Shown here one piece after another: positions 19,107-38,813 of a DNA stretch of 64,000 nt; the first letter of the stretch is position 1; the number at the start of each line of letters is the position of its first letter. A program made the translations under genes and the position numbers. The stretch comes from Macrostomum lignano. Its lineage: Eukaryota. The DNA lies in assembly GCA_002269645.1 (NCBI GenBank), contig NIVC01001355.1, positions 205,882-269,881 on the forward strand, in the 5' to 3' direction. The notes under the pieces were generated by a model. It saw only the letters and a program-made list of their open reading frames with translations, searched no databases and was not told where the DNA came from.

Positions 19107-22100
19107 ATGCAGTCAGCCGGCTTCAAGGTCACCCTGCTGGTCCTCGCCGTCTCGCCCTGGCTGTCCGAGGCGGCCGGAGCCGGCAAGGTGGCCGCCTACT
19201 CGGCCAGAAATGCCAAAACCGGACAGCGGATTGTCGGCTGCCCGCTTGCCGACACCGGAGCGGGCATCGCTGGCGTCGCCGCCACCAAGTCGATGCAGGG
19301 CTGCGCCGCTCTTTGCCGAGCGCGCGCCCCGATTGCGCCGCTTTTGCGTTCAGCGGCGCCAAAGCGAAGTGCGAGCTGAGCAGCGGCGCGCCCGGCGCCG
19401 GGGCCTGCGCGCTCAGCCCGGCCGAGGGTTGGACGGCCTTCAATTTGGCCGACTTCAGGGAGCCCAGCGTGAGTCAGGGTTTAAATTTCTACCTAATCTT
19501 AGGTATGCCAAGGATACCTAAGGATGCCAAGTGTGTCTTTCAGATGTCATGTCGTGTATTCGCTCCGATATGTCCAGGTCAATATAAAGATTGAACAAAT
19601 GACTACTGATGATTTAACCCTAAGAGTACGAGTAGCATAATTTAACCCTAGGGTTGTAGTCTAGTGGTTAAAGCGTCGGACTCACGACTTGAAGGTCGAG
19701 GGTTCGATTCCGGATCCTACTGGAACAATTTGTGTCCTTGAGCAAGTCACTTTACTCTGCGTTGCTTCAGGTCACTCAGCCAGCATTAGCTGGGGTAATT
19801 GAGGGTGCGTGACGGCGACCCCCCAGTCCCTGGACTGAACAGCCGTACGCAGCTTTCAGATGCGCTGCGCAATAGCTGCGGCTGAGCTGTCGGTTGCACA
19901 TCTGGTCCAATTGGGGCAGGTGCAATCAATTATTGTTATTATTAGTACTCGTATAATTATATATTATTTTCGTCTTTTATTTCGGCCCTCCAGACCACCG
20001 TGGGAGTCTGTGAGGGCTCCGCCAATGCCTGCCTCAACGATGGCGTCTGCCTGTCCCGGACAGAGCAAACTGACGACAGCTTCGTGTGCGCCTGCCAGGC
20101 CGGCTACTCCGGCGACAGGTGCCAGACTGCCGGTGAGGTCGCGGGTTCGATGCTTTTGTTTTCGTGTCTGTTTCTCTACGAAAATGGATAGAAAAACAAA
20201 GTTTTCGGAAAATTCTGCTATGAATTCCAGTAAGCCAGCCAACGTGGTCCGCCTGGTCGAACTACAGCGCCTGCTCGTCCACCTGCGGCCAGGGCGTTCG
20301 GAAACGAAGCCGCAGCTGCCTGGATGCCAGTGGCAACCCGGTGGCTGCTGTGGCTGCCTGCGGCTCGGACAGTCCCGACGCCTTTGAGGCCTGCAGCAGC
20401 AGCGTCTGTCCAAGTTAGTCAATCTACCTTCCTATCTATCTATCTATCTATCTATCTATCTATCTATCTATCTATCTATCTATCTATCTATCTATCTATC
20501 TATCTATCTATCTATCTATCTATCTATCTATCTATCTATCTATCTATCTATCTATCTATCTATCTATCTATCTATCTATCTATCTATCTATCTATCTATC
20601 TATCTATCTATCTATCTATCTATCTATCTATCTATCTATCTATCTATCTATCTATCTATCTATCTATCTATCTATCTATCTATCTATCTATCTATCTATC
20701 TATCTATCTATCTATCTATCTATCTATCTATCTATCTATCTATCTATCTATCTATCTATCTATCTATCTATCTATCTATCTATCTATCTATCTATCTATC
20801 TATCTATCTATCTATCTATCTATCTATCTATCTATCTATCTATCTATCTATCTATCTATCTATCTATCTATCTATCTATCTATCTATCTATCTATCTATC
20901 TATCTATCTATCTATCTATCTATCTATCTATCTATCTATCTATCTATCTATCTATCTATCTATCTATCTATCTATCTATCTATCTATCTATCTATCTATC
21001 TATCTATCTATCTATCTATCTATCTATCTATCTATCTATCTATCTATCTATCTATCTATCTATCTATCTATCTATCTATCTATCTATCTATCTATCTATC
21101 TATCTATCTATCTATCTATCTATCTATCTATCTATCTATCTATCTATCTATCTATCTATCTATCTATCTATCTATCTATCTATCTATCTATCTATCTATC
21201 TATCTATCTATCTATCTATCTATCTATCTATCTATCTATCTATCTATCTATCTATCTATCTATCTATCTATCTATCTATCTATCTATCTATCTATCTATC
21301 TATCTATCTATCTATCTATCTATCTATCTATCTATCTATCTATCTATCTATCTATCTATCTATCTATCTATCTATCTATCTATCTATCTATCTATCTATC
21401 TATCTATCTATCTATCTATCTATCTATCTATCTATCTATCTATCTATCTATCTATCTATCTATCTATCTATCTATCTATCTATCTATCTATCTATCTATC
21501 TATCTATCTATCTATCTATCTATCTATCTATCTATCTATCTATCTATCTATCTATCTATCTATCTATCTATCTATCTATCTATCTATCTATCTATCTATC
21601 TATCTATCTATCTATCTATCTATCTATCTATCTATCTATCTATCTATCTATCTATCTATCTATCTATCTATCTATCTATCTATCTATCTATCTATCTATC
21701 TATCTATCTATCTATCTATCTATCTATCTATCTATCTATCTATCTATCTATCTATCTATCTATCTATCTATCTATCTATCTATCTATCTATCTATCTATC
21801 TATCTATCTATCTATCTATCTATCTATCTATCTATCTATCTATCTATCTATCTATCTATCTATCTATCTATCTATCTATCTATCTATCTATCTATCTATC
21901 TATCTATCTATCTATCTATCTATCTATCTATCTATCTATCTATCTATCTATCTATCTATCTATCTATCTATCTATCTATCTATCTATCTATCTATCTATC
22001 TATCTATCTATCTATCTATCTATCTATCTATCTATCTATCTATCTATCTATCTATCTATCTATCTATCTATCTATCTATCTGTCTATCTATCTATCTATC

Positions 22101-37100: not shown

Positions 37101-38813
37101 AAGGCGTGAGTTCGGCGATTGACACAATGAATGAATTCAAGTAGTTTAGAAACTCTATTAAAGATTTTAAGCCAATAGGCTATTGACAGGATACTTCTCT
37201 AAAAGGACGTTCAGAAATTACCCCTCTCTAAGATGAGTTAGGATACTTAATATGAGCCGCTACACGCGTGTGTAGGCTTCTGAGTTCCTACTCTTCGTCA
37301 GCTGGTCTTAACCGCTGTTCCAAGACCTCTTCTGTAGACGCACACGTTTGAAGCTTTATTTAACTGTCATTGCGCAGATTCGCTTCAAATTCTTTTGATG
37401 CTACTATTCAGTAGGCTATTCAGTAGCAATCTCTTATTTAATTCTGAATAGAATTCCGCTTTTGAAAATTTAGTCGGTAAAAATTGACTGTTTTCAGAGG
37501 CCAACTGCGCAGATTGGGTCGCACTGGGCCTTCAGGACTCGGCTGCGGTGGACATTCAGCCTGCTGAAGGAGTGGAGGCTCGGGCCTACTGCAACGTCAC
37601 TGATAACTCCACCATGTTGGGTAAGATCGTGGCGGGGCTGTGGTGCTAAAATCGCAACAGAGAAGAACAAAATTAAACAGTGCAGCTTGAATGCAGTTCA
37701 ATATTTTAAACGTCGGCCTTGGACACGATGGATAAAGAGTTGGAGCCACAGTCGAAGGACACCATCACTCGTAGCGATACAATTTCATTGTTTGGTTTTG
37801 TTCATGTATGATGCAACCAGCTTAAATTTAACCGTTTTGCGATGGTTTGAATTCTAGAAGCTTTAATGCGCCAATATATAAATACCCCCCCCACAATTGA
37901 AGGGCACAGCCTGCAGAGCAATGAGACAGTTGTACACGGCTTCGAGTCGCCCGGCTCTTACCAGATAACGCTGCACTATGCCGGAGGCTCAACCGCAGCC
38001 GCTAGCGCTCTGGCCGCTTCGGCCAAGCGCTGCGAACAGTTTCTAAGACTGCGCTGCCGCAACAGCTTGCGGACTCTGGCGGCCGCCACAGGCGAGGTGA
38101 ATGACTGTATATTAAGATTTCTAGCAAGTATTTCTATTAAATACTTCAATAAATAAATAAATAAAAAACGTTTGTTTGTATACACCAACGCGTCAGGTAA
38201 TGACCTGGTGGAACAATCGCCAAGGCAGGAAGATGACCTCATGGGGCAGTGTGCCCAACAATTTGACAATGTGCAGCTGCGGCTATCTGAGAACGTGCAG
38301 CCAGCCAAACTACCTGTGCAACTGCGACGGCTCGACCAATGACTGGGCAGAGGATAGCGGCTACATCGGCGATGCCAGCATGCTGCCCGTGCTCAGTGTG
38401 CAGGTCGGAGACACAGGTGAGTAGCTGAAGCGGATTTTTATATAAGGTGGCTTCCCGTACAGGAATCCGACCTATCGACGTCGCTGGGTTATCCGTCGGC
38501 CTATTTAAAAAATTACCTACTTGCCAGCGTTGCTCTTTGACGTCGGGTATGTCGGCAGAAGTTGAAATGTTGCACGGGCTTCGAATGTATGTGCAAACTG
38601 GTGAGGTCGTAACCCCTGGACGCTAAGTCTTAGAGTCTACTCCTAGAGAACCAAAGTGTTAGAAAACAGAGACGAGTTCTAGCCTATTCCACAAATTTCG
38701 CAGCTCTCGAGGCAACCTATCACATTACAAACAACCCTGTCAACTCTCTCCCACCAGGCAATCTGAATGAGTTCGCAGCTGTGCTGGTGGGACCTCTAGT
38801 CTGTTGGCACTGA
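19107..38813 (+). CDS. Secreted mosaic protein: SP-PAN/apple-EGF-TSRx2-SRCR-TSRx11-Caspr-type fibrinogen-like domain (~1,220 aa, 21 exons, one frameshift in exon 1)
   Basis: Exons: 19107-19468 (signal peptide MQSAGFKVTLLVLAVSPWLSEA; PAN-like CAALC..DCAAFAF...KCEL; frameshift ~19320); 19994-20132 (EGF CLNDGVC..FVCACQAGYSGDRC); TSR 20231-20413 and 22693-22854; SRCR 22950-23138 plus 23558-23737 (YVCSDGFD..GAVVCRSLGF / LECTGAEDTLQSCPH..AYVLC); TSR 24298-24468, 26003-26167, 28701-28865, 29452-29622, 30693-30857, 31414-31584, 31674-31838, 32801-32971, 34498-34665, 35302-35472, 36926-37105 (WS.WS.CS.TCGGG...R.R.C); C-terminal module 37498-37620, 37903-38096, 38197-38416, 38758-38813 (ANCADW..AYCN, VHGFESPGSY..CEQFLRLRC, WWNNRQG..WG..CSCG..CNCD..WAEDSG..LPV..GDT, VGPLVCWH*). 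All junctions GT-AG and phase-compatible. Confidence 0.9.
19651..19955 (+). mobile_element. SINE family A, full-length tRNA-derived SINE with CORE-like segment (intron 1 of the TSR gene)
   Basis: A-box TAGTCTAGTGG (~19657), B-box GGTTCGATTCC (19701), CORE-like TGTGTCCTTGAGCAAGTCACTTT (~19731). 3' domain shared with 10825-10950 and 43484-43833. ATT-rich tail. Confidence 0.85.
20432..22684. repeat. (TATC)n / (GATA)n microsatellite, ~2.25 kb
   Basis: Essentially perfect, with a single TGTC variant at 22081. Fills intron 20414-22692. Confidence 0.99.
23155..23410. repeat. 27-bp minisatellite in the intron splitting the SRCR domain
   Basis: Unit GATGGGTGTCTTTTGGGTGTCCGCTCT, ~9 copies. Confidence 0.95.
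23814..24165. repeat. 23-bp minisatellite grading into a 27-bp variant
   Basis: GTGTCGGTGGAGCTCTCTGTGCA (~9 copies), then GTGTCGGTCGGTGGTGCTCTCTATGCG (~5 copies). Confidence 0.95.
25105..25730. repeat. 19-bp minisatellite, ~32 copies
   Basis: Unit GGGTGCATTGGAGTGAGGT. Confidence 0.97.
26236..27942. repeat. 23-bp minisatellite, ~74 copies
   Basis: Unit GGGTCTGACTCTCGTGTGATATT, with recurrent variants (TCATACT, AGG, CATG). Confidence 0.97.
29860..30505. repeat. 45-bp C-rich minisatellite
   Basis: Unit GGCCCCATTAACCCAGCACCCCATTACCCCCACTCTCTCAGCTTC. Confidence 0.93.
31008..31372. repeat. 23-bp minisatellite, ~16 copies
   Basis: Unit GAGATCCCTTCAGGACAGAATGA. Confidence 0.95.
32990..34350. repeat. 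21-bp polypurine minisatellite, ~65 copies
   Basis: Unit GAAGGGAGGGAAGAGAGGAGT. Begins ~20 bp after the exon 14 donor. Source of the ERSEGRE, GVKGGKR and FPPFTPL ORFs. Confidence 0.97.
35953..36700 (+). mobile_element. SINE family B (tRNA-derived), interrupted by a MITE/minisatellite insert at ~36197-36630
   Basis: Head GGTCCGTAGCCCAGTGG...GGCTCGATTCCAAGTGCAGTCACATTAATTTGG. Body ..GTACATGCCGAACGATAA..GTTAGGGCCGCTGTACACTCC and tail GGAGTCGGCGGAATGGCAGTAATGCCTCTCGCCGGTTGTG match the reverse complement of 58830-59163. A related fragment lies at ~40220-40300 (-). Confidence 0.75.
36325..36508. repeat. 21-bp minisatellite, ~9 copies
   Basis: Unit GCAGGAACTCATTTTAGCGCC. Confidence 0.95.

Follow-up and report, generated by a model that had tools for sequence, protein, structure and literature searches.

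Does the run of thrombospondin type-1 repeat (TSR) exons on contig NIVC01001355.1 of the flatworm Macrostomum lignano belong to one gene, is that gene functional, and is its product restricted to flatworms? The stretch of DNA analyzed here (the window, 64,000 nucleotides (nt), positions 205,882 to 269,881 of the forward strand, assembly GCA_002269645.1) carries these exons between positions 19107 and 38813 (all coordinates refer to the window). The gene is BOX15_Mlig003665g2 in the Mlig_3_7 assembly, and GenBank annotates only a fragment of 160 amino acids (aa). Our reading, to which we assign a probability of about 0.7, is that there is a single gene coding for a mosaic protein of 1,216 aa, probably secreted, which belongs to a conserved spiralian family.

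Gene model and domain architecture

The gene has 21 exons, as the original prediction had proposed; they lie on the + strand, from an ATG at 19107 to a TGA at 38811-38813, and every border is of the AG/GT type. The prediction's statement that all exons are compatible in phase and add up to 3,671 nt had to be corrected, since exon 1 has lost one C from a homopolymer (see below) and the coding sequence in the window, with the exon 6 acceptor at 23579, measures 3,650 nt. With the missing C restored it becomes 3,651 nt, i.e., 1,216 aa plus the stop; both 3,650 and 3,671 leave a remainder of 2 when divided by 3. The acceptor at 23579 is used in database protein models (P0224 and P0230-P0232) and in the spliced cDNA of a related species (contig L001, described below). 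The SRCR junctions 23157/23586, and the acceptor 23558 implied by a total of 3,671 nt, were dropped in favor of the pair 23138/23579 given by transcript and model evidence. After restoring the C, residues 1 to 455 equal those of UniProt A0A1I8IEA7 (P0224; 457 aa, exons 1 to 7), which reads CRARAPDC in frame. The spliced product of exons 19 to 21 is identical to UniProt A0A1I8HE69 (P0001; 155 aa, labelled "Contactin-associated protein-like 2"). No encoding contig is on record for either entry. The TSR-coding exons (3, 4, and 7 to 17) are all of phase 1-1 and contain a single TSR apiece.

The predicted protein consists of a signal peptide, a PAN domain, an EGF domain, two TSRs, one SRCR domain, 11 further TSRs and a C-terminal module of ~200 aa (197 aa from exons 18 to 21). 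This content is the one originally proposed. In the spliced product, Pfam recognized 13 TSP_1 stretches (PF00090, E 3.8e-126), which place the protein in the TSR superfamily, and the motif W..[WY]..C occurs 13 times. A single SRCR domain (PF00530) covers residues 302 to 398 (E 4.1e-15, 56.4 bits versus a cut-off of 26.1). The EGF domain scores 25.7 bits (cut-off 21.5) and PAN_1 (PF00024) 23.5 bits (cut-off 21.4), with a match that spans the frameshift site; PAN_1 reaches 32.7 bits in the mollusc Haliotis and 33.0 bits in Dreissena. One repeat, TSR12, departs from the usual pattern, lacking the cysteine after the R.R motif (RTREVAV) and having an extra one at its start (VNCQLSAW), while its Haliotis counterpart is canonical. 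The leader encoded by exon 1 is hydrophobic (MQSAGFKVTLLVLAVSPWLSEA...), and the hydropathy scan gave no sign of a transmembrane segment, as the highest Kyte-Doolittle window of 19 residues (1.36) is the leader itself (residues 8 to 26), and nothing else exceeds 1.3. Cysteine makes up 8.7% of the 1,216 aa, and there are 30 W-x-x-W/C motifs (C-mannosylation), 8 C-x-x-S/T-C-x-x-G motifs (O-fucosylation, POFUT2-type) and 15 N-glycosylation sequons. By these motifs the protein is probably heavily glycosylated and disulfide-rich. The spliced product contains neither KR-rich regions nor, according to Pfam, any vWD, C8, TIL or LDLa domain. The domains that define hemicentin, SCO-spondin, ADAMTS, properdin, semaphorin-5 and the Mlig-ap adhesives are all missing, so the protein is none of these, in line with the original prediction.

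A conserved spiralian family

Relatives were collected by an exhaustive HMMER search with the C-terminal fragment A0A1I8HE69, which gave 951 cluster representatives at E<=1e-3, the best 150 of which were examined. One of them, Haliotis XP_046330803.2 (P0095; 1,205 aa, "ADAMTS adt-1-like isoform X14"), combines PAN_1 and SRCR with 13 TSP_1 and the C-terminal module. Its alignment with the M. lignano protein covers 1,176 positions at 38% identity and is collinear, domain for domain, from the signal peptide to the C terminus; judging from this alignment, the two are orthologues. Dreissena KAH3696852.1 displays PAN, EGF, two TSRs, SRCR, ~22 TSRs and the module, and Dreissena XP_052257629.1 is a further relative from the same genus. 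Lingula XP_013380180.1 has two TSRs, SRCR, ~23 TSRs and the module without PAN-EGF, its model being probably truncated at the N terminus. Dimorphilus CAD5111793.1 (DgyrCDS1067) shows an SRCR (weak match), a long TSR run and the module, together with extra N-terminal pieces. The order TSR1-TSR2-SRCR is directly visible in the alignment for Dreissena and Lingula, and the alignment of the N-terminal head has 49 invariant columns across four phyla. The sequences thus indicate an architecture that is conserved in at least four spiralian phyla (flatworm, mollusc, brachiopod and annelid) and is not a flatworm novelty. The idea of a lineage-specific protein has to be abandoned, given the end-to-end match in Haliotis and the shared core (two TSRs, SRCR, a TSR run and the C-terminal module) in Dreissena, Lingula and Dimorphilus.

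Several spiralian proteins with this architecture were already in RefSeq/GenBank, but only under names that are automatic and wrong ("ADAMTS adt-1-like" and "SCO-spondin-like"). This goes part of the way towards the refutation named in the original prediction, an architecture already annotated in many animals. Pfam detected no ADAMTS protease, disintegrin or spacer domain in M. lignano or in the Haliotis proteins P0095 and P0181 (XP_071117871.1), so they are not ADAMTS; the true ADAMTS9 matches carry PF01421, PF01562, PF05986 and PF08685. SCO-spondin is defined by a set of vWD, C8, TIL, LDLa, EMI and a C-terminal cystine-knot (CTCK) domain. A published description of it lists vWFD, TIL, C8 and LDLrA (PMC7333891). 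According to Pfam, none of the SCO-spondin domains is found in the M. lignano, Dreissena, Lingula and Dimorphilus proteins, and the "SCO-spondin(-like)" label of Dreissena KAH3696852.1 and XP_052257629.1 and of Lingula XP_013380180.1 is wrong. For Haliotis, 17 or more isoforms are predicted; they differ from one another in complete TSRs, as exact 55-aa cassettes, which fits the symmetric phase 1-1 TSR exons of M. lignano. Our literature search retrieved no publication naming these accessions, the gene identifier or this architecture, and a supplement search for Mlig003665 was empty. The family is uncharacterized so far; what the analysis chiefly contributes is an improved annotation and the refined view of the Caspr-type domain that follows.

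The C-terminal module

For the last 197 aa Pfam returned no family match, only noise (Big_3_5 and PKD), and no GON, COLFI or Fibrinogen_C. A single-sequence search of the PDB with the module gave no match at E<=10, and a word-indexed protein search gave the M. lignano fragment only. The module is an autonomous, cysteine-rich unit of ~200 aa, often in tandem, found in at least 951 clusters at 50% identity and without a Pfam model of its own. It is carried by Caspr/CNTNAP/Neurexin-IV proteins, cnidarian fibrillin-like proteins, amphioxus Sushi/EGF proteins, vertebrate Xlink-CUB-SRCR proteins and the spiralian TSR proteins. The vertebrate carriers include frog and sturgeon proteins (P0007, P0009, P0010, P0012 and P0013) in which two tandem modules accompany a link domain, CUB and SRCR. 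Labelled "uncharacterized" or "versican core protein-like", these seem to form a further family around the module that has not been studied. A sea urchin CNTNAP2-like protein (P0068) aligns over the whole 155 aa (E 2.5e-20), and P0078 matches at E 1.3e-19; both have F5/8C and four LamG domains. In Caspr proteins, the module occupies the stretch without a Pfam match that separates laminin G domains (from LamG2/EGF to LamG3), and the M. lignano module has the 15 invariant columns of the family, 9 of them cysteines. These alignments identify it as homologous to the Caspr/CNTNAP "fibrinogen-like" region. This is the name under which the region is known in Caspr, where the Caspr2 ectodomain is monomeric by electron microscopy (PMC6236484).

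A profile of 29 family sequences compared with the PDB matched fibrinogen-related and COLFI domains only at its first ~55 positions (5 to 62; FGL1 E 5e-7). Among the single members, 16 of 29 gave a partial COLFI match in Pfam and 11 of 29 a partial Fibrinogen_C, the M. lignano member giving neither; the COLFI matches are limited to the first ~60 profile positions. These ~55 residues (C..l...G...sG.Y.I.P.....f.V.CDM) correspond to subdomain A of the fibrinogen-related domain (PF00147; FGL1, fibrinogen beta/gamma, angiopoietin and tenascin). The module is not a canonical domain of this kind: the remaining ~150 residues have no sequence match to it, the template modeling score (TM) is ~0.3, and the match disappears when subdomain A is left out. 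AlphaFold2 modeled the Haliotis module with a mean predicted local distance difference test (pLDDT) of 96.1 and a predicted TM (pTM) of 0.90, and the product of M. lignano exons 19 to 21 with 94.2 and 0.88. When these were compared with the PDB by Foldseek, procollagen C-propeptides (4AE2, 6FZW and 5K31, E 1e-8 and TM 0.51-0.58) ranked first and were the sole full-length match (over both models E 1e-8 to 1e-6 and TM 0.51-0.59; 14-18% sequence identity, root mean square deviation 5-8 Å). In the model without the first subdomain (exons 19 to 21) they were the only significant matches. The predicted fold of the module thus resembles the C-propeptide of fibrillar collagens and not a full fibrinogen domain. 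Of the original description, "Caspr-type FBG-like", the first half is supported by homology; sequence and fold together imply that the term "fibrinogen-like" suits no more than its first quarter (~55 aa), the whole being nearest to the collagen C-propeptide fold.

Gene copies, frameshift and alternative 3' ends

At GCGCGCGCCCC, a site flanked by two conserved cysteines of the PAN domain, the frame of exon 1 shifts. The C run at 19327-19330 has four C in the window and five in both other genomic copies (L002 and L004), which is the sole difference in exon 1, and the 1-nt deletion truncates the frame of the window copy after 90 aa. A mini-intron restoring the frame was considered and rejected, the shift being confined to 17 nt between the two cysteines with no GT..AG inside. 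The locus, including introns and flanks (8597-34476), exists in three copies 98-99% identical, on NIVC01001355.1, NIVC01000186.1 and NIVC01001192.1, in agreement with DV1 being a line with hidden polyploidy and additional chromosomes. The cluster of A0A1I8IEA7 contains three GenBank proteins (Mlig_3_7), BOX15_Mlig003665 g1 and g3 (457 aa each) and g2 (160 aa). The g2 locus is that of the window (12994-34476, 21,483 bases identical), and those of g1 and g3 share 98-99% identity with it. The g2 model is so short because the frameshift pushes the open reading frame (ORF) caller to the first downstream methionine. Taken at face value, a frame that ends after 90 aa and a GenBank ORF starting at an internal methionine suggest that the window copy is a pseudogene, or the null allele of a redundant copy, and its long frame a relic. 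The assembly is indeed redundant, with 180 Mb in duplicated blocks, and DV1 carries extra large chromosomes; it is also PacBio-based, and its authors used ORF intactness as a measure of quality (PMC5730564). Given a PacBio-based and redundant assembly, an error in the homopolymer or a null allele in one of the redundant copies is a more likely explanation of the indel than a dead gene. The lesion is the only one in 3,650 nt and falls in a C homopolymer of a GC-rich run, and the comparison of the window copy with g3 gives a ratio of nonsynonymous to synonymous differences (pN/pS) of 0.16-0.18 and no further indel or stop. The assembly also holds the intact copies g1 and g3, so that the gene itself is not dead even if the lesion is real. 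A relic in the window is thus possible, at clearly less than even odds.

The second question is whether the exons form one gene or at least two, i.e., a 457-aa protein (PAN, EGF, two TSRs, SRCR and one TSR; exons 1 to 7) and an independent downstream gene for the remaining TSRs and the C-terminal module. All three GenBank models and A0A1I8IEA7 end in ...CPGK by reading through the exon 7 donor (G/GT AAA TAG). An AATAAA lies 67 nt past this intron 7 stop, and both the in-frame stop and the signal are conserved in three of three copies. L001 (a Logan RNA-seq contig, SRR28338165, 1,590 nt, presumably from another Macrostomum species) is spliced as exons 1 to 7, encodes a protein 72% identical and likewise enters intron 7. 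Its PAN region contains, besides, an additional insert rich in alanine. RNA-seq underlies the annotation of M. lignano, with experimentally defined poly(A) sites for ~80% of the genes (PMC5730564). No gene is called across exons 8 to 14 in L002, L003 or L004, and UniProt has the 3' end as an entry of its own. On the question of separate transcripts, raised in the original prediction, the existing annotation is indeed split into a 5' model (exons 1 to 7) and a 3' fragment (exons 19 to 21), but several observations argue for one gene. Exon 8 opens in phase 1, without an ATG or signal peptide of its own; the UniProt model A0A1I8IIC6 (P0225) contains the exon 7-8 junction; and in Haliotis the whole architecture, with its 13 TSRs, is a single collinear protein. 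We compared the three genomic copies over exons 8 to 14 and found no stop or indel in any of them and a pN/pS of 0.18-0.21 (binomial P 3e-4 to 0.02), so these exons are under purifying selection. Split models also have precedents, since transcript assemblies broke Mlig-ap1 into 6 and Mlig-ap2 into 4 unconnected pieces (PMC6410801), and transcripts overlapping repeats were removed from the M. lignano set before its submission to GenBank (PMC5730564). The collinearity with Haliotis and the purifying selection on exons 8 to 14 therefore favor one gene with two 3' ends, and we consider two genes unlikely. A short isoform of 457 aa (the head plus one TSR), produced by polyadenylation in intron 7, is plausible from the sequence. 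Still more improbable, indeed hardly credible, is that the protein arose as an adhesive, mucus or reproductive innovation specific to flatworms. The gene itself is uncharacterized, and Mlig-ap2, which has C-terminal TSP-1 repeats, does act in M. lignano adhesion (PMC6410801), but full-length orthologues occur in other spiralian phyla, Pfam detects none of the vWD, C8, TIL, LDLa or KR-rich regions, and 1,216 aa compare with 5,407 and 14,794 aa in the adhesives.

Several points weigh against a single intact gene of this family. The frameshift could be a true inactivating mutation. The 3' end of L001 is adapter and not poly(A), and a retained intron 7 in pre-mRNA is possible. We found no transcript spanning exons 8 to 18, the GenBank annotation of all three copies ends at exon 7, and the 3' end is known only as the 155-aa UniProt fragment. 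The PAN_1 and EGF scores in M. lignano barely exceed the Pfam gathering cut-offs, the range of the family outside Spiralia was judged from the best 150 of the 951 matches, and literature and supplement searches found no expression data for the gene.

Feature map of the locus and neighboring genes

The features of the gene are listed in Table 1. Close to the stop of the long form there is also an ATTAAA at 38960 and further AATAAA at 39035 and 39267. Introns 3, 5, 6, 7, 8, 10, 11, 14 and 16 each contain a long micro- or minisatellite, such as (CTAT)x563 in intron 3, a 23-mer x75 and a 21-mer x64, which produce long spurious ORFs on both strands.

Table 1. Exons, alternative ends and intron satellites of the M. 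lignano mosaic gene
Feature	Position in window	Strand	Evidence
Exon 1: start codon, signal peptide, PAN/apple; frameshift site	19107..19468	+	Pfam; P0224, P0231, P0232 read CRARAPDC
Exon 2: EGF domain	19994..20132	+	Pfam EGF 25.7 bits; junctions identical to P0224
Exon 3: TSR1	20231..20413	+	Pfam
Exon 4: TSR2, CPSWSPWSEWS...TCG.G, kept in all four phyla	22693..22854	+	Pfam; alignment
Exon 5: SRCR, first half; weak donor GTCTGC	22950..23138	+	Junction 23138/23579 as in P0224, P0230, L001
Exon 6: SRCR, second half	23579..23737	+	Pfam; junction as in P0224, P0230, L001
Exon 7: TSR3	24298..24468	+	Pfam
Start of intron 7, alternative 3' end: stop TAG 24474-24476, AATAAA 24543-24548	24469..24548	+	Protein models; L001
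Exon 8: TSR4	26003..26167	+	Exon 7-8 join in model P0225
Exon 9: TSR5	28701..28865	+	Pfam
Exon 10: TSR6	29452..29622	+	Pfam
Exon 11: TSR7	30693..30857	+	Pfam
Exon 12: TSR8	31414..31584	+	Pfam
Exon 13: TSR9	31674..31838	+	Pfam
Exon 14: TSR10	32801..32971	+	Pfam
Exon 15: TSR11	34498..34665	+	Pfam
Exon 16: TSR12, atypical cysteine pattern	35302..35472	+	
Exon 17: TSR13	36926..37105	+	Pfam
Exon 18: C-terminal module, part 1; only part resembling the start of fibrinogen-related and COLFI domains	37498..37620	+	
Exon 19: C-terminal module, part 2	37903..38096	+	Exons 19-21 = A0A1I8HE69
Exon 20: C-terminal module, part 3, C.CG...C...CNCD...W..D.G...LPV...GDTG	38197..38416	+	
Exon 21: end of C-terminal module and TGA	38758..38813	+	
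Putative poly(A) signal for the long form, 158 nt past the stop	38971..38976	+	
Intron satellites	20432-22684, 23155-23394, 23816-24203, 25103-25729, 26236-27960, 29886-30487, 31006-31376, 33002-34342, 36319-36510		

Intron 1 harbors a tRNA-like repeat (ggttaaagcgtcggactcacgac...ggttcgattcc; 19641-19800, + strand) with a second copy at 43670-43812 (- strand, ~80% identity). A tRNA gene in intron 1 was discarded, as ARAGORN and Rfam call no RNA gene there, and the repeat is probably a tRNA-derived short interspersed nuclear element. Upstream of the mosaic gene there is a WD40-repeat coding exon (13698-14552, +), and a gene of the Na+/H+ exchanger family (PF00999) has exons directly downstream (39708-42558, -). 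Farther along, possibly retrotransposon-related ORFs begin near 46762, and a retrotransposon without long terminal repeats (47968-51579, +) carries, in one long open frame, domains for an apurinic-type endonuclease, reverse transcriptase and RNase H. At 60571-62049 (+) lies a gene resembling methionine aminopeptidase 1, in which a zf-C6H2/MYND-like finger precedes Peptidase_M24.

Possible role and comparison with known systems

The domain composition suggests, tentatively and at somewhat less than even odds, a bridging or recognition role outside the cell, in the matrix or at the cell surface. The head (PAN/apple, EGF, TSR1, TSR2 and SRCR) and the C-terminal globule would each have their own partners among glycans, matrix proteins and proteins of the cell surface, the two being kept apart by a glycosylated rod of 11 TSRs. 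The length of the rod, which differs among species and, in Haliotis, among isoforms, might be adjusted by skipping TSR cassette exons. Polyadenylation in intron 7 would yield the 457-aa isoform, a head with one TSR and without the rod or the C-terminal module. It is doubtful that the module is a non-collagenous relative of the C-propeptide that has kept chain association, in which case the long form might assemble into multimeric TSR "bouquets" and the short isoform might act as a monomeric competitor. If a C-propeptide-like domain is indeed present in Caspr, it may help to interpret the CNTNAP2 variants located there.

As for annotation, a gene now split into a 160- or 457-aa model and a 155-aa "Contactin-associated protein-like 2" fragment can be corrected to one, and the misnamed orthologues along with it. 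A conserved spiralian extracellular family is now defined and can be studied in a flatworm amenable to RNA interference and transgenesis. Current understanding is not overturned; this is an ordinary kind of mosaic matrix protein.

Among known systems, Mlig-ap2 (14,794 aa) is a secreted protein with multiple TSP-1 repeats and likewise comes from a gene fragmented in transcript assemblies (PMC6410801). However, it has vWD, TIL, LDLa and 46 long central repeats, and no PAN, SRCR or Caspr-type module. Fibrillar procollagens (COLFI, PF01410) have a collagen triple helix or coiled-coil stalk upstream of the C-propeptide, whereas the M. lignano protein has neither. Caspr/CNTNAP proteins are transmembrane and neuronal, with F5/8C, four LamG and two EGF domains and no TSR, PAN or SRCR, in contrast to this TSR mosaic, which is predicted to be secreted. 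Within the family itself, Dreissena, Lingula and Dimorphilus have 16 to 25 TSRs versus 13 in M. lignano. Haliotis, unlike the M. lignano models, has no known short isoform of the intron 7 type, but XP_046330803.2 and XP_071117871.1 repeat the domain order and number of the flatworm protein, the former at 1,205 versus 1,216 aa.

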